From the NCBI GenBank assembly GCA_977017575.1, contig CDRNVI010000190.1:62001-126000 (forward strand): a DNA stretch of 64,000 nucleotides. The letters are read 5' to 3'. Below are positions 41,409-56,386 of this stretch, in pieces. A program made the position numbers and the translations under genes. Position 1 is the stretch's first letter. Each line of letters begins with the position of its first letter. The notes beneath the pieces were generated by a model, which had not been told where the DNA came from, did not search any database, and was given only the letters and a program-made list of their open reading frames with translations. The stretch comes from Paramoeba atlantica. Taxonomy: Eukaryota; Protista; Discosea.

Positions 41409-44283
41409 TTATCCACTCGGAAGAAGAGAAGAAGGAGCAAAAGATAAAAGACGAGATTTTTCGACATTTTCGAGCGCTTCAAGAGTGAGAGGGTGTCTCT
41501 CTCCATGGGTGATTGAGAGAATTGTTGCTGCTTCTTCAAATGATTGGAGAGATTCAGTGATTCCTATTAACCTTTGAAAGAGAAGAAAGAGAGAGAAAGA
41601 GAGAAAGAGAAGAAAGAGAAGAAAGAGAGAAGAGAAGAAGAAAAGGGGTTGTTGAGAAAAGGTTGGAAATGGAAATATGGGAGAGATGAAAAAAAAGGAA
41701 AGAAAAATGAATGAATGAATGAATGAACAAACATTTGCAATTTTCCAACTTTGAAATTATGAAAAGCAACAGCAGGCCAATACCTCCCATAATAAGCTTT
41801 TTGTTTACAAGTTTTAAATAATATTCTGTCATTTTGTTTTGGAGAAAAGAAAAGAAAAAGAAAAGAAAAAGAAAAGAAAAAGAAAAAGAAAAAGGGAAAA
41901 AGGAAAAAAGAAAAGAGAAAAAAACCATAAAAAGAAGGAACAAGTTGAACACCAATCTCAAGTGCATCAATCCATCTCTCATCACAAAGAAGACATTGAA
42001 AGAGTGATTGAGAGAGAGAAAATAGGATATAATTGTGCTGTTTCAAGAAATGAATTATTCAAGAAAGAAAAAAAGAATAAAAGAAAAAAAATTAGGATTA
42101 AAAAGAAAAAGAAAAAGAAAAAGAAAAAAAGAAAATAAGAGAGAGGAAAAACCTGATGAAGAAGAGAAGAAAGAGAAGAAACAAGAGAAAAGAGATCATC
42201 TGTTTTTGCATCTTTGAAATCGAAATTGGTCATTAAAGATGAACAAGAATTCGAGACAGAAATATCATTCAAAGATAAATTCTCTTTCTTTTTGTATTTT
42301 CCTGTGAACCAACCAACCATTAAAAAGAGATCATATGAGAAATGAGAGAAGAAAAGAAAAAAAACCAATTTTCAGGAATAGTTTTTGAGAAAATTCTGAA
42401 TACAAAATAATTGTCTTACAATTCTCACATTCCCATCTCTCTCCTTCTCCTATTTCTTCCTCTTCTCCTATTTCTTCCTCCTTTTCTTCTTTCTTCTCTT
42501 TCTCTTTCCCTTGGTTGATGACAATCCCATATCCTTTTCAAAACTTTGTTAAATTCTCCAAGAGAGGAAAAGAAAAGAAAAGAAAAGAAAAGAAAAGAAA
42601 AGAATAAAGAAGAAATAACAAAAAGAGGATTAAATCAAACCAGAACACTGAGGACAAACAATTGCTTTCATCATCTTCTCAGACAACTCCAATACATCTT
42701 CCCCATATTTTGGAAAAGAAGAAGAACAAGAAACAGAACCAAGAGAGCGAGAAGAGAGAGAACAAGGAGAGAGAGGAGAGCAGAGAGAACAAGAACATTG
42801 AAAGAAGAAACTCTCTTGTAAATCTTTGATTCTTTCTTCTTTTGGTCTTCCTTTTTCAACATAACATATTGTCAGTTCTTCTCCTGAAAACAAAATTACA
42901 TCCAATTAATTCTTGTTAAAAGAACAAAAAGAAAGGCAAAAGAAAAAAAAAGAAAAAAAATGGAAATGAAAAAAAAACCTTTTTCAATTGGACAAGAAGC
43001 TCGAACCAAAAGATTTGTTCCATGAAAAGTACAAATTGAATTCGGTTTACATGAATGATTTACCATCGCCATCTCTTTATACAATCCAACTCCTATCTTT
43101 TTTAAAAAAGAAAAGAGGAAAAGAAAGAAAAAAAGAAAGGATCAATTGTGAGAGTGGAAGAGAGGTTTCAGAAAAGGAGAAAGGAAAAGAGAAGAAAAAG
43201 AAGAAAAAGGAAAGAAAAAGAAAACCTGATTCATCTCAGCATCACTGATAACAAGACAATTCGACATCAAAGAAGCAAAAAGAGAAAACAAAAAAGAAGA
43301 AGAAAGAGAAGAAAAGGAATTCTCAATCTTTTTCTTTGATGCATAAGAAGAAAGAAGATAATGTGTCCCCATTGCCAATTGAGTTGTTGCTTCTAGTGTT
43401 TTCCCTTTCAGTTCTTCTTTGTGGTTTATCAGCTGTTTCATATCATCGATTTCTGACAAAGAGAGATTTTAGAAGATTTGTTTCTTTTTTGATCTTTCCT
43501 TTTTGATCTTTCCTTTTTTTTCATCTCTATCTTTCTTTGAATATTTGAAAAATTGAGAATTACTGAACCAAATGATCTGAGATAAGTTAAATAAATTTTC
43601 CTACTTCCCAAATAGATATTTTAATACAAAAAAGAAATGCAAAGAAAAAACCTGGAAGAGAAGAAGAATTGCGAGCAATAATTCGAAACATGAGCCGCAT
43701 ACTTCTTGTGGGTCTCTTGCTTGGTCCACCAATTTGCAAAATCTCACATTCCATCTTTTACAAAAACTCTTTTTCAGTCTCCACCTCTTCTTCTCTTCTT
43801 CTCTTTTCTTTTCTTTCTCTTCTTTTCTGATTTTTTCTCTCTTTTCTTTGTTCTTTTGTTAACCTTGTGAATTGGCCAGACATTCTTCTGGCATTGACGA
43901 GAACAATATTTCAAATACTGACACTGACTACATCTTTTCAATGTCATCCTATTTTTCTTGGTTTTAGAGAAAGAAAGGAGAAGAAGATATCAAGAGAGAG
44001 AGAAAGGGAGAAAACAAGAAGGAAACCCTGTTTTAAAACAACCATCACAATAAGATGAAATAGATTCTTCATCCAGAACAGCAGCAACAGGTTTTTCTTC
44101 CCAAACCAACTTCCCTCTCCCAACCTTTTTCAAAGTTGTTTTTTGAGAACGAAAGAAGACAAGATAAGACACAACAAATCAAAATACCTTTGATGAAGAA
44201 GAAGAAGAAGAGAGAAAAACACCTCTCCCCTTTCCCACAGCGTGTTTCACTTCCCAACAACCATCTTTGTCCCATTCACCCAT
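41409..44283 (-). CDS. SMYD-type SET/MYND lysine methyltransferase, copy 1 (no zinc-finger tail)
   Basis: GKGRGV, MYND (CDGC..CSQC..YCSRQCQ..W..H..C), NHSC.PN, GEELTICY, post-SET CSCSLC and a TPR-like C-terminus. Stop TAA at 41409. Confidence 0.88.
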
Positions 44284-44557: not shown

Positions 44558-44762
44558 TTAAAAGTAAAAAAAATTTGTGAAGGGTGTGGTTGGGTGGTGG
44601 GTGCTCTGGGTTTTGGATATTGGTTTGCTTGAAGAGAGTGTGAGTGATGGGGGTGGGAGTTTGAAAGGGGGGAGCGGTTTGGTTGGGGAGAGTGGAGGTC
44701 TCAGTATCAAGGGTGGTGTGGAAGTGGAGGGGGGAGTTGATGAAGAGCTGAGAGTTGGAAGG

Positions 44763-44794
<32 letters not shown>

Positions 44795-46714
44795 GGAAGA
44801 GGGAGAACAAGAGGTTTCTGATTTTTTGGGGGTTCTTGCATCCTTTGCTTGTGCACAATGCTTTTTTCCTCTCTTCTGTTGCTGGTCTATTCGGTTTGCA
44901 AACAAAATTAAATGTGAGTTCACTTGCTCAGGAATTTCTTTTTTCGCCTTTTCAAACCATTGTTTCACTTTTCTTAAAATTGCTTGATTCTCTGTCTCAA
45001 GAAAGATGATATCTCCCAAGCTAAAAAACACCTCAGAGTGATTTTCAAAAACATGATCATACAAAGAAACTAAATTTCCAGGATTCAATGTTGTTTGACA
45101 ATCCCCCAAAGAACACCTCCAAAACACCCCCTCCTTTCGAAAACACCGCCTTTTCAGGACTGACATTCGACGTCCTCCTTTACATGGTGTTGGTGTAGAA
45201 GCACTGCCTTCTCAAATAATAATATTAGAAAAATAAAGATGAACTTTAAAAAAAAGAAAATAAACCTGCTTCACTCTCTCCACCAGAAACAAAAGAAGGA
45301 GGAGAAGGAGAAGGAGAAAGAGGAGGAGATGAGGAGGAAAAGGAGGAGGAAGAGGAGGAAGAAGAAGAGGAAGAAGAAGGGGGAGAATGAGAGGCTTCTG
45401 ATTTTTTGGGGGTTCTTTCATCCAATGTTTGGGCATAATCTATTTTTCTTCTCTTCTGTTGATGGTCTATTTGGTTTGCAAAAAAATTTAAATGTGAGTT
45501 CACTTGCTCAGGAATTTCTTTTTTCGCCTTTTCAAACCATTGTTTCACTTTTCCTAAAATTTTCTGATTCTCTGTCTCAAGAAAGATGATATCTCCCAAG
45601 CTAAAAAACACCTCAGAGTGATTTCCAAAAACATGATTGTAGAGAGTAGCTAAGCTTGTCCTGTGTATCAATTTTGAACAATTCCCCAATGAACACTTCA
45701 AATACACCCCCTCCTTTTGAAAACACTGACTTTTCAGGACTGACTCTTCACACCTTGAAGTTTGACCTCTTTTACATAGTAGTGTTGGTGTATAAGCACT
45801 TCCTTCTCAAACAATAATATTAGAAAAATAAAGATGAACTTTAAAAAATAGAAAATAAACCTACTTCACTCCCTTCACCAGAAAGAGGGAGTTCTTGTCT
45901 TGGTGGACGCATTTTTCTTTTCTTTCGGTGAAGGTCTATTTGGTTTGCAAAAAAATTTAAATGTGAGTTCACTTGCTCAGGAATTTCTTTCTTCGCCTTT
46001 TCAAACCATTGTTTAACTTTTACTAAAATTTCCTTATTCTCTGTCTCAAGGAAGATGATATCTCCCAAGCTAAAAAACACCTCAGAGTGATTTTCAAAAA
46101 CATGATTGTAGAAACAAACTGCGCCTGTAGTATTTAGCAAACACGTTTGACAATCTCCCAAAGAACACTTCCAATTCACCCCCTCCCTTCGAAAACACCG
46201 ACTTTTCAGCACTGATATTTTACCCCGACCTCCTTTGCATGGTGTTGGCGCATAAGCACTTCCTTCTCAAATAATAATATTAGAAAAATAAAGATGAACT
46301 TTAAAAAAATAGAAAATAAACCTACTTCACTCCCTTCACCAGAAAGAGGGAGTTCTTGTCTTGGTGGACGCATTTTTCTTTTCTTTCGGTGAAGGTCTAT
46401 TTGGTTTGCAAAAAAATTTAAATGTAAATTCACTTGCTCAGGAACGTCTCTCTTTGCCTTTTCAAACCATTGTTTAACTTTCACTAAAATTTCCTTCTTC
46501 TCTGTCTCGAGAAAGATAATATCTCCCAAGCCAAAAAACACCTCAGAGTGATTTTCAAAAACATGATCATAGAAATAAACTAATTTCGTACTTTGTATCA
46601 AAAATGTTTGACAATCCCCCAAAAAACACTTCCAATTCGCCCCCTCCTTTCGAAAACACCGACTCTTCAAGAATGCAACCCGGCTTCCTTTTAGTGTTGG
46701 TGTATAAGCACTTC
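44558..46714 (-). repeat. Zinc-finger exon array of SMYD copy 2 (4 units)
   Basis: Exons 46714-46322 (393 nt), 46262-45861 (402), 45802-45266 (537) and 45207-44558 (terminal), separated by near-identical 58-59 nt phase-1 introns. Confidence 0.85.
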
Positions 46715-49634
46715 CTTCTCAAAGAATAAGATTAGAAAAATAAAGATGGACTAAAAAAAAAGAAAAAAACCTGCTTCACTCCCTCCACTTGAAACAAAAG
46801 AAGGAGAAGAAGGAGAAGGAGAAGGAGAAGGAGCAAAAGATAAAAGACGAGATTTTTCGACATTTTCGAGTGCTTCAAGAGTGAGAGGGTGTTTCTCTCC
46901 ATGGGTGATTGAGAGAATTGTTGCTGCTTCTTCAAATGATTGGAGAGATTCGGTGATTCCTATTAACCTTTGAAAGAGAAGAAAGAGAGAAAGAGAAGAA
47001 AGAGAAGAAAGAGAGAGAAAGAGAAGAAAGAAGAAGAAAAGGGATTGTTGAGAAAAGATTGGAAATGGAAATATGGGAGATGAAAAAAAAAAAGGAAAGA
47101 ATAATGAATGAATGAAAAAACATTTGCAATTTTCCAACTTTGAAATTATGGAAAGCAACAACAGGCCAATACCTCCCATAATAAGCTATTTGTTCCCAAG
47201 TTTTAAATATTATGTCATTTTGTTTTGGAGAAAAGAAAAAGAAAAAGGGAAAAAGGAAAAAGAAAATGGGAAAAATAACCATAAAAAGAAGGAACAAGTT
47301 GAACACCAATCTCAAGTGCATCAATCCATCTCTCATCACAAAGAAGACATTGAAAGAGTGATTGAGAGAGAGAAAATAGGATATAATTGTGCTGTTTCAA
47401 GAAATGAATTATTCAAGAAAGAAAAAAAGAAAAAAAAAAAAAAGAAAAATTAGGATAAAAAAAAGAAAAAAAGAAAATAAGAGAGAGGAAAAACCTGATG
47501 AAGAAGAGAAGAAAGAGAAGAAACAAGAGAAAAGAGATCATCTGTTTTTGCATCTTTAAAATCGAAATTGGTCATTAAAGATGAACAAGGATTCGAGACA
47601 GAAATATCATTCAAAGATAAATTCTCTTTCTTTTTGTATTTTCCTGTGAACCAACCAACCATTAAAAAGAGATCATGAAAAATGAGAGAAGAAAAAGAAA
47701 AGAAAAGAAATTAAATCTAAATCTAAATCGAAAGAAAATCAAGCATAAAAAAAAACCAATTTTCAGGAATAGTTTTTGAGAAAATTCTGAATACGAAATA
47801 ACTGTCTTACAATTCTCACATTCCCATCTCTCTCCTTCTTCTTCCTCTTCCTCTTCCTCTTCTCCTGTTTCTTCCTCCTTTTCTTCTTTCTTCTCTTTCT
47901 CTTTCCCTTGGTTGATGACAATCCCATATCCTTTTCAAAACTTTGTTAAATTCTCCAAGAGAGGAAAAGAAAAGAAAAGAAAAGAAAAGAAAAAGAAAAA
48001 AGAAGACTAAAAAAGAAAAAAAAGGATTTAAAATCGAACCTGAACACTGAGAACAAACAATTGCTTTCATCATCTTCTCAGACAACTCCAATACATCTTC
48101 CCCATATTTTGGAAAAGAAGAAGAACAAGAAACAGAACCAAGAGAGCGAGAAGAGAGAGAACAAGGAGAGAGAGGAGAGCAGAGAGGACAAGAACATTGA
48201 AAGAAGAAACTCTCTTGTAAATCTTTGATTCTTTCTTCTTTTGGTCTTCCTTTTTCAACATAACATATTGTCAGTTCTTCTCCTGAAAACAAAATTACAT
48301 CCAATTAATTCTTGTTAAAAAGAAAAAAGGGAAAAAGAAATGAAAAAAGAAAAAAATGGAAAAAAAAAGAGAAAAAAAAACCTTTTTCAATTGGACAAGA
48401 AGCTCGAACCAAAAGATTTGTTCCATGAAAAGTACAAATTGAATTCGGTTTACATGAATGATTTACCATCGCCATCTCTTTATACAATCCAACTCCTATC
48501 TTTTTTAAAAAGAAAAGAGAAAAAGAAAGAAAAAAAGAAAGGATCAATTGTGAGAGTGGGAGAGAGGTTTCAGAAAAGGAGAAAGGAAAAGAGAAGAAAG
48601 AGAAGAAAAAAGAAAGAAAAAGAAAACCTGATTCATCTCAGCATCACTGATAACAAGACAATTCGACATCAAAGAAGCAAAAAGAGAAAACAAAAAAGAA
48701 GAAGAAAGAGAAGAAAAGGAATTCTCAATCTTTTTCTTTGATGCATAAGAAGAAAGAAGGTACTGTGTTTCCATGTCAATTGAATTGTTGCTTCGAATGT
48801 TTTCCCTTTCAGTTCTTCTTTGTGGTTGATCATTTGTTTCATATCATCGATTTCTGAGAAATTGAGATTTTAGAAGAATTGGCTCCCACTTCTTTGAATT
48901 TTTTCTTTTTTTCAATCTCTATCTTTCTTTGTTGGATTGAATAAATATTTAAAAAATTGCAGAATTATTGAATGTTAATAAAAAAAAAGAAATGCAAAGA
49001 AAAAACCTGGAAGAGAAGAAGAATTGCGAGCAATAATTCGAAACAAGAGCCGCATACTTCTTGTGGGTCTCTTGTTTGGTCCACCAATTTGCAAAATCTC
49101 ACATTCCACCTTTTACAAAAACTCTTTTTCAGTCTCAACCTCTTCTTCTCTTCTTCTCTTCTTTTCTTTTCTTTCTCCTTCTTTTCTGATCTTTTCTCTT
49201 TTCTTTGTTCTTTTGTTAACCTTGTGAAGTGGCCAGACATTTTTCTGGCATTGACGAGAACAATATTTCAAATACTGACACTGACTACATTTTTTCAATG
49301 TCATCCTATTTTTTCTTGGTTTTAGAGAAAGAAAGGAAGGAGAAGAAGATATCAGAGAGAGAGAAAGAGAGAAAACAAGAAGGAAACCCTGTTTTAAAAC
49401 AACCATCACAATAAGATGAAATAGATTCTTCATCCAGAACAGCAGCAACAGGTTCCTCTTCCCAAACTAGCTTCCCTCTCCCAACCTTTTTCAAAGCTGT
49501 TTTTTGAGAACGAAAGAAAAAAGATAAGACACAACAAATCAAAAAACCTTTGATGAAGAAGAAGAGAGAAAAACACCCCTCCCCTTTCCCACAGCGTGTT
49601 TCACTTCCCAACAACCATCTTTGTATTCACCCAT
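44558..49634 (-). pseudogene. SMYD copy 2 fused to four zinc-finger modules; 1-nt frameshift near 48775 (pseudogene or sequence error)
   Basis: ATG at 49634. Reads ttgacatggaaac where copy 3 has ttggcaatggaaac, shifting frame before NHSC. All downstream exons, including four finger exons, stay open. Confidence 0.65.
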
Positions 49635-50020
49635 CGACTCTCCCAACAAAACCAACAAAACAACAAAACAACAAAACCAACAACAAAAACTGAAAATTTG
49701 AAAAGACAACGGTTTTTCGTTCGTGGTGTCCCTTTCCATAATTCCTTTCTTTTTTGGTGTCCCTTTGGAACTCTTTCATTTTTCTCAGCTCTCTTGAGTC
49801 GAATCCTTCATTTGATTTCGAAAGAATTTATTTTCTAGAATTATCCAAGATCCAGCTCCAATTTTTGAATCTGGTGGAAGTTGTTGGTCCACTTGTTCTT
49901 TTCTTCTTCTGAAAGCAATCTAAAAACTCATTGAATGAAATAAAATAAAATCCATTAAAAGTAAAAAACAATTCTTCTTCCTCTTGTTTTTTTGGGAAAA
50001 GAATTTGATCCCGATCACTT

Positions 50021-53000
50021 TCAGGAAAATACTCTCTCAACTTCACAGTTTCTGGTAATGCAAAGGATATTAAAATCAATATCGTCTTCATCACTTTCAC
50101 GATACAACATCTCATAAATTGTCAAAATGTTCAACTGCAACCCAACATCAGGAGAAGCCTCAAAGGAAGAGGGATAAGTCATCCAAAATAAAAAATATCC
50201 ACTTTCAAAATCACCTTCTTCATCTTCCTCACATGATGGGAAACTTCGATGGATTTCGTTCGCTCGAAAGGTTTGAAAGGTTCCCATTTCGGAATTCGTT
50301 CCACCCAAAATTTGGAATGGCGTTACTCCTGCTCCAATAAAAGGTGATGGAATCAATAAAGGCCACATTCTCTTTTTAATATATTGCTTCCATTGAACTG
50401 ATAGATCTTTTGGATCAAAGGTATCATCACTTGGAGGAACATCACTTGCATAAGGAAAGAGAATCATTTGTGTTGTTTTTCCTGAAATATACACAAAATT
50501 AACCCACACATTCTGAAGAAATGAACCAACACAAAACTCTTGGTTCAAAGCACGAGATTTAACAAACTCAATATCTGTGAATTGTGCTGTATCTTTCTGA
50601 AACCCTTGCAATTCAATTGCAACATTCTGTTGAAAAGAATTCAAGTGCATCTTTGTTTCTGAATCTTCCAAGATAAATTTTCGTTGGTTCGCATTATTAA
50701 TTGAAACCCACTTCGAATCACCTTCTTCCTCTATGATACTCTCTTTTCTTGCTTGTTGAAAAACTTCCTGAGCAGCAGATTCCCCCATAAAATTACAAAA
50801 GAAAGATGTATCTTTTACATAAAACCGTTCACCTTCAAAAGAAGAAGACGAGGAGGAAGATGAGGAGGAAGAAGAAGAGGAAGAAGAAGAGGAAGAAGAA
50901 AAAGAGGGAGAACGAGAGGTTTCTGATTTCTTGGGGGTTCTTGCTTCCTTTGTTTGTGTTTCATCCATTTTTCTTCTCTTCTGTTGATGGTCTCTTTGGT
51001 TTGCAAAAAAATTTAAATGTGAGTTCACTTGCTCAGGAATTTCTTTCTTTGCCTTTTCAAACCATTGTTTCACTTTTCTTAAAATTATTTGATTCTCTGT
51101 CTCAAGAAAGATGATATCTCCCAAGCTAAAAAACACCTCAGAGTGATTTTCAAAAACATGGTCATAGAGATAAACTAAGTTTAGACCTTTCAGTGTTGTT
51201 TGGCAATCCCCCAAAGAACACTCCCAAAACTCCCCATCCTTTCGAAAACACTGACTTTTCAGCACTGACATTCGATATCGACTTCTTTTACGTTGTGTTG
51301 ACAGATAAGCACTTCCTTCTCAAATAATAACATTAGAAAAATAAAGATGAACTTTAAAAAAAAGAAAAAAACCTGCTTCACTCCCTCCACTAGAAACAAA
51401 AGAAGGAGAAGAAGGAGGAGAAGAAGGAGAAGAGGAAGGAGGAGAAGGAGAAGGGGTATATCCCGCTTGGATTAACAAATCAATAAGATCTTCTCTCTCA
51501 CTAAACCCATACATCTCAGGGTCAATAGAGAGAGAAGAGAGAGCCTCTTTTATTTCTTTGATGCTCATTTCTTTGATTGGTTTTTGATATGGAGGAGGAG
51601 AAGAGGAAGAAGAGGAAGAAGAGGAAGAAGAAGAAGAACAAGAGGAAGAAGAACAAGAGGGAGAACGAGAGGTTTCTGATTTCTTGGGGGTTCTTGCTTC
51701 CTTTGTTTGTGTTTCATCCATTTTTCTTCTCTTCTGTTGCTGGTCTCTTTGGTTTGCAAAAAAATTTAAATGTGAGTTCACTTGCTCAGGAATTTCTTTC
51801 TTTGCCTTTTCAAACCATTGTTTCACTTTTCTTAAAATTGTCTTATTCTCTGTCTCAAGAAAGATGATATCTCCCAAGCTAAAAAACACCTCAGAGTGAT
51901 TTTCAAAAACATGGTCATAGAGATAAACTAAGTTTGAACCTTTCAGTGTTGTTTGGCAATCCCCCAAAGAACACTTCGAAAACTGCCCATCCTTTCGAAA
52001 ACACCGACTTTTCAGCACTGATATTTGATATCCCTGACCTCTTTTATGTTGTGTTGGTGAAAAAGCACTGCCTTCTCAAATAATAATATTAGAAAAATAA
52101 AGATGAACTTTAAAAAAAGAAAAAAAACCTACTTCACTCCCTCCACTGGAAACAAAAGAAGGAGAAGGAGAAGGAGAAGGGGTATATCTTGCTTGGATTA
52201 ACAAATCAATAAGATCTTCTCTCTCACTAAACCCATACATCTCAGGGTCAATAGAGAGAGAAGAGAGAGCCTCTTTTATTTCTTTGATGCTCATTTCTTT
52301 GATTGGTTTTTGATATGGAGAAGGAGAAGAGAAAGAAGAGAAAGAAGAAGAGGAAGAAGAGGAAGAAGAAGAACAAGAGGGAGAACAAGAGGTTTCTGAT
52401 TTCTTGGGGGTTCTTGCTTCCTCTGTTTGTGCATAATGTATTTTTCGCCGCTTCTGTTGCTGGTCTATTCGGTTTGCAAAAAATTTTAAATGTGAGTTCA
52501 CTTGCTCAGGAATTTCTTTCTTTGCCTTTTCAAACCATCGTTTCACTTTTACTAAAATTGTCTGATTCTCTGTCTCAAGAAAGGTGATATCTCCCAAACT
52601 AAAAAACACCTCAGAGTGATTTTCAAAAACATGATTGTAGAAAGAAACACAGTTTCCAGGATTCAGTTTTGTGTGACAATCCCCCAAAGAACACTTCCAA
52701 AACTCCCCATCCTTTCGAAAACACTGCCTTTTCAGGACTGACATATTACCCCGACCTCTTTTGCAATATGTTGGTGTATAAGCACTGCCTTCTCAAATAA
52801 TAACATTAGAAAAATAAAGATGAACTTTAAAAAAAAAAAAGAAAAAAACCTACTTCACTCCCTTCACCAGAAACAAAAGAAGGAGAAGGAGAAGAGGAAG
52901 AAGAGGAAGACAAAGAAGAAGAACAAGAGGGAGAATGAGAGGTTTCTGATTTCTTGGGGGTTCTTGCTTCCTTTGTTTGTGCTTCATCCATTTTTCTTCT

Positions 53001-53344
53001 CTTTTGTTGATAGTCTATTTGGTTTGCAAAAAAATTTAAATGTGAGTTCACTTGCTCAGGAACTTCTTTCTTCGCCTTTTCAAACCATTGTTTCACTTTT
53101 CCTAAAATTTTCTGATTCTTTGTATCAAGAAAGATGATATCTCCCAAGCTAAAAAACACCTCAGAGTGATTTTCAAAAACGTGATCATAGAACTGAACTA
53201 AGTTCTGACTTTGCATCAAAAATGTTTGACAATCCCCCAAAGAACACTTCGAAAACACCCCCTCCTTTCGAAAACACCGACTTTTCAGGAATGAAATTGA
53301 ACCCGGACGTCTTTTACATAGTAGTGTTGGTGTATAAGCACTTC
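50021..53344 (-). repeat. Zinc-finger exon array of SMYD copy 3 (4 units)
   Basis: Exons 53344-52850 (495 nt), 52788-52129 (660), 52071-51373 (699) and 51315-50021 (terminal), separated by 57-61 nt phase-1 introns. Confidence 0.85.
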
Positions 53345-56300
53345 CTTCTCAAATAATAGCATTAGAAAAATAAAGATGAACTTTAAAAAAAAACAAAAAA
53401 AACCTACTTCACTCCCTCCACCAGAAACAAAAGAAGGAGAAGGAGGAGGAGAAGGAGAAGGAGAAGGAGAAGGAGAAGGAGAAAGAGAAGGAGAAAGTCC
53501 TTGTCTTGGTGGACTTATTGAATGTTTGGAATTCTCAACACCATCATTACTGTTAGAAGAAGGAGAAGGAGAAGGAGCAAAAGATAAAAGACGAGATTTT
53601 TCGACATTTTCGAGTGCTTCAAGAGTGAGAGGGTGTTTCTCTCCATGGGTGATTGAGAGAATTGTTGCTGCTTCTTCAAATGATTGGAGAGATTCAGTGA
53701 TTCCTATTAACCTTTGAAAGAAAAGAAAGAAAAGAGAGAGAGAGAGAAAGAGAAGAAAAGGGGTTGTTGAGAAAAGATTGGAAATGGAAATATGGGAGAG
53801 ATGAAAAAAAAAGGAAAGAAAAATGAATGAATGAATGAATAAACATTTGCAATTTTCCAACTTTGAAATTATGAAAAGCAACAACAGGCCAATACCTCCC
53901 ATAATAAGCTATTTGTTCCCAAGTTTTAAATATTCTGTCATTTTGTTTTGGAGAAAAGAAAAAGGAAAAAGAAAATGGGAAAAATAACCATAAAAAGAAG
54001 GAACAAGTTGAACACCAATCTCAAGTGCATCAATCCATCTCTCATCACAAAGGAGACATTGAAAGAGTGATTGAGAGAGAGAAAATAGGATATAATTGTG
54101 CTGTTTCAAGAAATGAATTATTCAAGAAAGAATAAAAGAAAAAAAAAAAAAGAAAAATTAGGATAAAAAAAAGAAAAAAAGAAAATAAGAGAGAGGAAAA
54201 ACCTGATGAAGAAGAGAAGAAAGAGAAGAAACAAGAGAAAAGAGATCATCTGTTTTTGCATCTTTAAAATCGAAATTGGTCATTAAAGATGAACAAGGAT
54301 TCGAGACAGAAATATCATTCAAAGATAAATTCTCTTTCTTTTTGTATTTTCCTGTGAACCAACCAACCATTAAAAAGAGATCATATGAGAAATGAGGGAG
54401 AAGAAAAAGAAAAGAAAAGAAAAGAAATTAAAATCGAAAAAAAATCAAGCATAAAAAAAAACCAATTTTCAGGAATAGTTTTTGAGAAAATTCTGAATAT
54501 GAAATAACTGTCTTACAATTCTCACATTCCCATCTCTCTCCTTCTTCTTCCTCTTCTCCTGTTTCTTCCTCCTTTTCTTCTTTCTTCTCTCTCTCTTTCC
54601 CTTTGCTGATGACAATCCCATATCCTTTTCAAAACTTTGTTAAATTCTCCCATGAAAGAAAAAAGGAAAGAAAAGAAAAATAAAGAAAGGAAAAAATGGA
54701 AAAGAAAAGAAAAGAAAAAGAAAAAAGAAGATTAAGAAAGAAAAAAAGGGATAAAATCAAACCAGAACACTGAGGACAAACAATTGCTTTCATCATCTTC
54801 TCAGACAACTCCAATACATCTTCCCCATATTTTGGAAAAGAGGAAGAAGAACAAGAAACAGAACCAAGAGAGCGAGAAGAGAGAGAACAAGGAGAGAGAG
54901 GAGAGCAGAGAGAACAAGAACATTGAAAGAAGAAACTCTCTTGTAAATCTTTGATTCTTTCTTCTTTTGGTCTTCCTTTTTCAACATAACATATTGTCAG
55001 TTCTTCTCCTGAAAACAAAATTACATCCAATTAATTCTTGTTAAAAGAACAAAAAGAAAGGATAAAGAAAAAAAAATGGGAATAAAAAGAGAAAAAAAAC
55101 CTTTTTCAATTGGACAAGAAGCTCGAACCAAAAGATTTGTTCCATGAAAAGTACAAATTGAATTCGGTTTACATGAATGATTTACCATCGCCATCTCTTT
55201 ATACAATCCAACTCCTATCTTTTTTAAAAAAGAAAAGAGGAAAAGAAAGAAAAAGAAAGGATCAATTGTGAGAGTGGAAGAGAGGTTTCAGAAAAGGAGA
55301 AAGGAAAAGAGAAGAAAGAGAAGAAAAAAGAAAGAAAAAGAAAACCTGATTCATCTCAGCATCACTGATAACAAGACAATTCGACATCAAAGAAGCAAAA
55401 AGAGAAAACAAAAAAGAAGAAGAAAGAGAAGAAAAGGAATTCTCAATCTTTTTCTTTGATGCATAAGAAGAAAGAAGGTACTGTGTTTCCATTGCCAATT
55501 GAGTTGTTGCTTCTAGTGTTTTCCCTTTCAGTTCTTCTTTATGGTTGATCATTTGTTTCATATCATCGATTTCTGACAAAAAGAGAATTTAGAAGAATTG
55601 TTTCTTTTTTGATCTTTCCTTTTTGATTTTTTTTTTCATCTCTATCTTTCTTTGGATTGAATAAATATTTAAAAAATGGCAGAATTATTGAATGTTAATA
55701 AAAAAAAAGAAATGCAAAGAAAAAACCTGGAAGAGAAGAAGAATTGCGAGCAATAATTCGAAACAAGAGTCGCATACTTCTTGTGGGTCTCTTGCTTGGT
55801 CCACCAATTTGCAAAATCTCACATTCCATCTTTTACAAAAACTCTTTTTCAGTCTCCACCTCTTCTTCTCTTCTTCTCTTCTCTTTTCTTTTCTTTCTCT
55901 TCTTTTCTGATCTCTCTCCTTCTTCTCTGATCTTTTCTCTCTTTTCTTTGTTCTTTTGTTAACCTTGTGAAGTGGCCAGATATTCTTCTGGCATTGACGA
56001 GAACAGTATCTCAAATACTGACACTGACTACATCTTTTCAATGTCATCCTATTTTTTCTTGGTTTTAGAGAAAGAAAGGAGAAGAAGATATCAAGAGAGA
56101 GAGAAAGGGAGAAAACAAGAAGGAAACCCTGTTTTAAAACAACCATCACAATAAGATGAAATAGCTTCTTCATCCAGAACAGCAGCAACAGGTTTTTCTT
56201 CCCAAACCAACTTCCCTCTCCCAACCTTTTTAAGCTGTTTTTTGAGAACGAAAGAAGACAAGATAAGACACAACAAATCAAAATTACCTTTGATGAAGAA

Positions 56301-56386
56301 GAAGAAGAAGAAGAGAGAAAAACACCCCACCCCTTTCCCACAGCGTGTTTCACTTCCCAACAACCATCTTTGTCCCATTCCCCCAT
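50021..56386 (-). CDS. SMYD copy 3 fused to four zinc-finger modules and a C-terminal domain of about 270 aa
   Basis: ATG at 56386; SET/MYND motifs present. The last SMYD exon (ends 53404) splices in frame to four finger exons. Stop at 50021. Not every upstream junction was checked. Confidence 0.8.

Follow-up and report, generated by a model that had tools for sequence, protein, structure and literature searches.

Concerted evolution sparing a putative specificity patch in orphan finger-like exon modules apparently fused to SMYD-type genes of Paramoeba atlantica

Tandem arrays of C2H2 zinc fingers, such as those of PRDM9 and the KRAB-ZNF proteins, consist of finger-like repeats that are homogenised by exchange and differ from one another just before the first histidine, and for PRDM9 arrays concerted evolution of this general kind, sparing a putative specificity patch, has been described (PMC3890296, PMC6116924). 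The same general pattern was found in a 64,000-nucleotide stretch of the amoeba Paramoeba atlantica (assembly GCA_977017575.1, contig CDRNVI010000190.1, positions 62,001 to 126,000 of the forward strand; hereafter the window), where eight copies (M1 to M8) of a finger-like module with the arrangement CX4C-X14/15-HX4H lie on the minus strand. What carries this known pattern here is an orphan domain, apparently fused to SMYD-type SET genes; a SET-domain enzyme in the same gene would be a further likeness to the described arrays, if the splicing predicted below holds. Unlike the units of PRDM9 and KRAB-ZNF arrays, those of P. atlantica are 130–230 codons long, occupy one exon each with its own intron, number four per gene, match no known profile and accompany a SET domain of SMYD rather than PRDM9 type.

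Compared with the classical C2H2 finger (PF00096; C-X2-4-C-X12-H-X3-5-H), the CX4C and HX4H pairs of the modules fit, whereas the spacer, with 14 or 15 residues in all eight, falls outside the consensus. The BED finger (PF02892) resembles the modules in a cysteine pair followed by a long spacer, an HX4H pair on a helix and an upstream aromatic residue (F/W), but its cysteine pair is CX2C. BED fingers have a comparable Cys–His spacing and bind DNA. The SMYD family is defined by a SET domain split by a MYND finger, and three gene copies at the locus have Pfam matches to both; the C-terminal array of finger-like modules, whose fusion to these genes is predicted from splice phases, sets the locus apart, and we know of no SMYD protein carrying one. 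If the modules are expressed in SMYD proteins, this would be an undescribed architecture, a lysine methyltransferase followed by four orphan finger-like domains.

Variation among the eight modules is concentrated in the segment between the second cysteine and the first histidine (Cys2–His1 segment), as an earlier note on this DNA had held. The mean pairwise nucleotide difference over the eight aligned units was 0.074 in the intron, 0.215 in the linker at the exon start, 0.125 in the hairpin up to Cys2, 0.354 (bootstrap 0.28–0.43) in the Cys2–His1 segment and 0.080 from His1 to a KRRK motif, and the highest of all 45-column windows across the unit coincided with the segment (0.354, against a median of 0.115). 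The near-invariance that the note had ascribed to the part after the segment and to the introns held for the intron and for the His1–KRRK part overall; the coding linker, three or four hairpin positions before Cys1 and a few sites in the second long helix vary as well.

The segment has 14 residues in M2 (52634..52675), M3 (51914..51955), M4 (51161..51202), M7 (45636..45677) and M8 (45056..45097) and 15 in M1 (53184..53228), M5 (46566..46610) and M6 (46105..46149), all on the minus strand, with CX4C before and HX4H after it in every module and the four putative ligands C16, C21, H36 and H41 invariant in 8/8; the translations agree exactly with the eight segments listed previously. M3 differs from M4 by a single codon, M1 from M5, its closest counterpart, by 6 of 45 nucleotides (nt) and M2 from its closest, M8, by 9 of 42, while M6 is 15–20 of 45 nt away from every other segment and M7, the most divergent, 18–23 of 42 from all others. 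The flanks of M7 are ordinary: between M7 and M8, 11 of 194 nt differ in the scaffold as against 23 of 42 in the segment. Within the segment, a leucine after Cys2+3, a valine, a leucine or phenylalanine three residues before His1 and an invariant tyrosine are conserved hydrophobic anchors, and the most variable positions are polar ones in a strand, a turn and helix positions −1 and +3.

The segments and their flanks have conflicting genealogies. The segment tree pairs M1 with M5, M2 with M8 and M3 with M4, which cuts across the two clusters in which the modules lie, while the flank tree joins the neighbours M5 and M6 with 95% bootstrap, M5 thus pairing with M1 by its segment and with M6 by its flanks. 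Each data set rejects the tree of the other, with p values of 0.017 and 0.040 in the approximately unbiased (AU) test.

A second, independent assembly of the locus (ENA ERZ24900291, contig ctg3668l, 38 kb), 98–99% identical to the window, has the same number and order of modules and identical segments throughout. Over the two module clusters (6.1 kb) the assemblies differ by 16 substitutions. The segments, 351 nt in all, contain none of these against an expectation of about 0.9, so that the comparison is powerless for the segments themselves. For nine of the 14 substitutions inside aligned units, the two alternative bases are both found among paralogous modules. The M1 linker holds a 45-nt tract (window 53297–53333) with five substitutions and a 3-nt indel that keeps the frame; most of the alternative states there match M2 and M6, and the tract looks like the trace of one gene conversion. 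Mosaic genealogies inside the unit are accompanied by allelic variants that copy paralogue states, as concerted evolution leaves them, and ongoing exchange between the modules is well supported, in agreement with the scaffold homogenisation proposed in the note. One change in the alternative M1 allele also creates a CAG six bases upstream of the position where other modules have TCAG.

Codon analyses gave a less clear answer on selection. In the segment, the proportions of nonsynonymous (pN) and synonymous (pS) differences were 0.355 and 0.364 (pN/pS 0.98) and the maximum-likelihood dN/dS ratio (ω) was 1.32, at a tree length per codon of 5.6; the corresponding values were 0.078, 0.137, 0.57, 0.78 and 1.0 for the rest of the exon core and 0.067, 0.143, 0.47, 0.69 and 0.92 for the C-terminal scaffold. 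By profile likelihood, the segment ω (interval ∼0.55–3.1) differed neither from 1 (p = 0.50) nor from the scaffold value of 0.69 (p = 0.11), while the scaffold (interval ∼0.35–1.25) rejected values of 1.32 and above (p = 0.03). The point estimate for the segment thus lies above that of the flanks, significantly above neither the flanks nor 1, and the dN/dS elevation looked for in the segment did not reach significance.

What is raised in the segment is total divergence, ∼5.5-fold in tree length, silent sites included. Because codons hit more than once could inflate the silent estimate, codons were also compared between pairs encoding the same residue: 27% of such pairs differed in the segment versus 7–11% elsewhere (column-wise Mann–Whitney p = 0.0016), and 6 of 9 same-residue columns were polymorphic in the segment versus 20 of 81 in the flanks (Fisher p = 0.016). 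Since silent divergence is raised as well, the segment looks older than its flanks, or mutates faster, which is not protein-level acceleration alone. Overall ω was high (0.78–0.92), and the transition/transversion ratio κ was 2.6. Diversifying selection on the segment, as the note had proposed, is hence plausible but unproven, with ω distinguishable from neither 1 nor 0.69, silent sites equally diverged and the segments identical in two genomes.

An AlphaFold2 model of the module (predicted local distance difference test score, pLDDT, 69) shows, in order, a hairpin that runs up to Cys1, a short strand following Cys2, one helix on which both histidines sit, and three more helices. A ββα finger of the classical C2H2 kind would likewise have its cysteine pair on a hairpin or knuckle and its histidine pair on a helix, but the finger-like matches in Foldseek have E values above 1. 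The segment comprises the strand, the turn and the six residues with which the helix begins, up to His1, and with a block pLDDT of 72–74 it is not disordered in the model. Its variable positions lie in the strand, the turn and the first helical turn, where a finger of such kind would touch its ligand. The best finger-like matches in Foldseek, all with E >1, were the BED fingers 2ct5 and 2djr (ZBED1, ZBED2), the ARS2 finger and Tramtrack, with TM-scores normalised by target of 0.41–0.47 for 2ct5 and 2djr. The 14–15-residue spacing, formerly taken to speak against DNA as the ligand, is a weak argument given the similar spacing of the DNA-binding BED fingers, which are the nearest, non-significant look-alikes. 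The four invariant ligands would be expected to bind zinc, and the basic linker and the KRRK patch would be compatible with nucleic-acid or chromatin binding.

Family searches, run exon by exon, yielded no meaningful match to Pfam (E up to 1 or 10) or NCBIfam for the modules, the finger part alone, the 272-residue domain that follows M4 or the extra tail motif of M2 and M3; specifically, no zinc-finger family was matched in Pfam at these thresholds or in NCBIfam, the C2H2 profile included, and the BED profile gave no match even at E 10. Profile search of 1.84 billion representative proteins returned only the modules' own open reading frame (ORF) and two bacterial TPR-CHAT proteins, a word-indexed search only ORFs of the 38-kb ENA contig, and the PDB sequence search, Foldseek and the ESM Atlas no significant match; a wide structural search with VIA-align gave generic helical-repeat matches only, over residues 40–100. 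By these searches the module is a lineage-restricted orphan without relatives outside Paramoeba atlantica. Its helical part (alignment residues ∼48–76; GD-II-F..E then WFEKAKKE) aligned with the TPR repeats of the TPR-CHAT proteins at E ∼1e-6, in 5–7 stretches per protein; these repeat-inflated matches were taken as spurious and the proteins were not accepted as relatives, the likeness probably being a convergent helix-turn-helix repeat pattern with no homology.

Taken as a whole, we put at roughly 55% the probability of the following account. The modules would be symmetric phase 1-1 exons of ∼130–230 codons, four behind each of two tandem SMYD-type lysine methyltransferase genes, each encoding in order a short basic linker, a β-hairpin, a CX4C...HX4H zinc-finger-like knuckle with its helix, a three-helix scaffold, the basic KRRK patch and a low-complexity tail. 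Gene conversion or unequal exchange among the copies would hold intron and scaffold within ∼7–8%, while the 14–15 Cys2–His1 codons, and to a lesser degree the linker, would escape homogenisation and retain old module-specific sequences, hence the several-fold excess of both silent and replacement differences in these parts. The modules would differ in binding specificity, and selection against converted copies would preserve these specificities. Of this account, the profile of variation, the mosaic history, the coding status and the lack of outside relatives are shown by the data, and zinc binding, splicing to the SMYD genes, contact with a ligand and selection are predictions. The locus is also a compact natural case of concerted evolution sparing a putative specificity patch, and since its scaffold is constant while one loop comes in eight natural forms, binding assays could test directly what that loop recognises.

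Several points weigh against this account. The segment dN/dS is ∼1 and not significantly above that of the scaffold, which neutral drift of a tolerant loop fits equally; the codon tests draw on no more than 15 codons in 8 sequences, and they assume a single tree, which recombination contradicts. No segment shows an allelic difference, at a power that is nil with two assemblies and ∼0.9 substitutions expected. No zinc-finger family gave a profile or significant structural match, the structural model is of moderate confidence (a truncated linker-plus-finger model was poor, with a pLDDT of 52, and was not used), and every exon and splice junction is a prediction from the nucleotide sequence. The adaptive part of the account is accordingly unproven.

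Possible, albeit unlikely, is that the pattern arose without any selection for diversity: a tolerant loop would drift and, once diverged, mismatch-sensitive recombination would stop conversion tracts at its edges. A segment ω of ∼1, the joint rise of silent and replacement divergence and the milder version of the pattern in the disordered-looking linker all agree with such a neutral mosaic. However, the intron should be at least as free to change and is yet only 7% divergent, so that a neutral loop had no head start and simple neutral drift hardly explains a loop divergence of 35%. Nor does a distance-decay model of conversion predict the low-high-low-high-low alternation at a ∼50-nt scale, and all eight segments keep their anchors and reading frame and vary in length by one codon only. 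Something protects the loop from overwriting; selection keeping the loops different is the most economical account, with divergence-limited conversion as a less likely possibility.

Another reading, in which the modules would be exon-like relics, decaying or not expressed, and their pattern would reflect duplication history and conversion but no function, appears improbable. The stretch of ∼65 nt upstream of each module is variable and resembles the 3′ end of an intron, but it is coding: the module frame is open in 8/8 units from a TGA inside a conserved ATTTGAG onwards, the stretch has six different lengths that all differ by multiples of three and require at least five independent length changes, and the actual module intron measures ∼67 nt. 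A reading of the stretch as a second, non-coding hotspot, which would have spoken against protein-level selection, was rejected on the open frames and in-frame indels. Between the two assemblies likewise, the linker indel is 3 nt and in frame, and single-base indels occur in T-runs of the intron.

All on the minus strand, the predicted internal exons run from a TTTGAG/ acceptor to a /GTGAAG donor and are M1 (inferred, 52859..53347, 489 nt, with linker, CX4C..HX4H finger, helices and Ser-rich tail), M2 (52138..52791, 654 nt), M3 (51382..52074, 693 nt), M5 (46331..46717, 387 nt, short tail), M6 (45870..46265, 396 nt, short tail) and M7 (45275..45805, 531 nt); all six lengths are multiples of 3, in phase 1-1 and with no internal stop. 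The terminal exons are M4 (50021..51318), in which the module continues as an orphan C-terminal domain of 272 residues before the stop at 50021, and M8 (44558..45210), whose tail is rich in Ser and Pro and whose stop lies at 44558. In-frame lengths, phase 1-1 and lack of stops mark symmetric exons, joinable in frame to one another and to the last exons of the upstream SMYD genes. Separate small genes were rejected as an interpretation, with an ATG near the start in only 3/8 modules and phase-compatible junctions in 8/8.

The relic reading can draw on the lack of homologues outside P. atlantica, the high overall ω, the status of M5 as a long-branch outlier and the lack in M1 and M5 of the TCAG found near the start of the other six modules. 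Against it stand eight frames open over 141–432 codons, the independent linker length changes and the six internal exon lengths that all preserve the frame, a scaffold ω interval mostly below 1 and, in the second assembly, a low-complexity expansion of ∼600 nt that is itself in frame. This expansion lies in the last exon of the SMYD gene upstream of M5 (window 46811–46833 versus L010:8734–9348), where ∼600 extra nt of Ser/Pro-coding low-complexity repeat and a duplicated short motif leave the frame open throughout, so that the alleles of a coding exon differ by a large structural change.

The modules are confined to this locus. Two conserved probes each gave 8 matches versus 0 expected, and six-frame search of the whole assembly (45.7 Mb, 248 contigs) found these eight only. 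The window itself is recognisably eukaryotic by its low GC content, short cis-introns and AG/GTTTTT donors. Repeat families and Pfam matches reveal three tandem SET+MYND gene copies on its minus strand. Copy C (53413..56386), 2.5% different from copy B, ends in a last exon with a module-type donor and intron directly upstream of M1 and is followed by M1–M4; copy B (46780..49635) likewise ends in a module-type donor directly upstream of M5 and is followed by M5–M8; copy A (41410..44280, start approximate), 2.4–2.9% different from B and C, has its own stop and no modules. The host gene has both marks of the SMYD class, the exons of copy B matching PF00856 SET at 22.4 bits, exactly the cut-off, and PF01753 zf-MYND at E 4.7e-9, and an NHSC motif, an EELxxxY-type motif and a post-SET CxCxxC can be read directly in its sequence. 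The last exons of B and C have no stop, and their Ser/Pro-rich end, donor and intron are the same as those ending every module. By splice phases and this common donor and intron, the modules are most likely spliced onto genes B and C.

A SET-domain gene directly upstream and splice-compatible in frame, together with differences that concentrate ahead of His1 while the scaffold is homogenised, invites comparison with PRDM9, whose arrays are described as following the same general pattern (PMC3890296, PMC6116924). A system in the full PRDM9 sense, in which a finger array with fast turnover directs a SET methyltransferase to genomic sites and recurrent positive selection acts on the contact residues, with high allelic diversity, is nevertheless very doubtful here. 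Segments, module number and order are the same in the two genomes compared, in contrast to the allelic diversity of PRDM9, ω is not above 1, a SMYD-type SET domain accompanied by a MYND finger stands in place of a PR domain, and the large modules in separate exons, four per gene, form no minisatellite of 28-residue fingers. A broader formulation, in which a protist SMYD-type SET methyltransferase would carry a programmable targeting array of orphan exon-encoded zinc modules, with the contact loop selected for diversity and the rest homogenised, as an independent analogue of PRDM9-type systems, strikes us as a long shot, if a less distant one. Least credible of all is locally targeted hypermutation of the segment, for which silent and replacement changes are indeed equally raised, but which sits badly with the lack of any new mutation in the 351 nt of segments between the assemblies, with the related pairs M1/M5, M2/M8 and M3/M4, which show inheritance and not scrambling, with an ordinary κ of 2.6 and with the lack of donor cassettes elsewhere in the genome.

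Some further features of the locus were recorded. The 272-residue domain after M4 (50024–50839, minus strand) is single-copy in the 45.7-Mb assembly, becomes acidic towards its end and had no match in Pfam or NCBIfam. The tails of M3 and M2 (51449–51613 and 52170–52330, minus strand) hold a common extra helix-loop-helix motif of ∼40 residues, that weakly resembles the first EF-hand of myosin regulatory light chains, at a non-significant E of 0.07; alternatively, it could be SAP/HeH-like. The introns of copy B (47400–49600, minus strand) have AG/GTTTTT donors with long tracts rich in T and C behind them, an uncommon type of 5′ splice site; the module introns could instead have A/GTGAAG or AG/GTTT as donor, each of which gives phase 1. 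The three SMYD copies differ by only 2.4–2.9% in substitutions, yet their alignment opens more than 60 gaps, most of them in intron repeats rich in purines or pyrimidines. Compared with the module arrays that follow them, in which M1 and M5 differ by ∼10%, the SMYD copies are either much younger or under stronger homogenisation.

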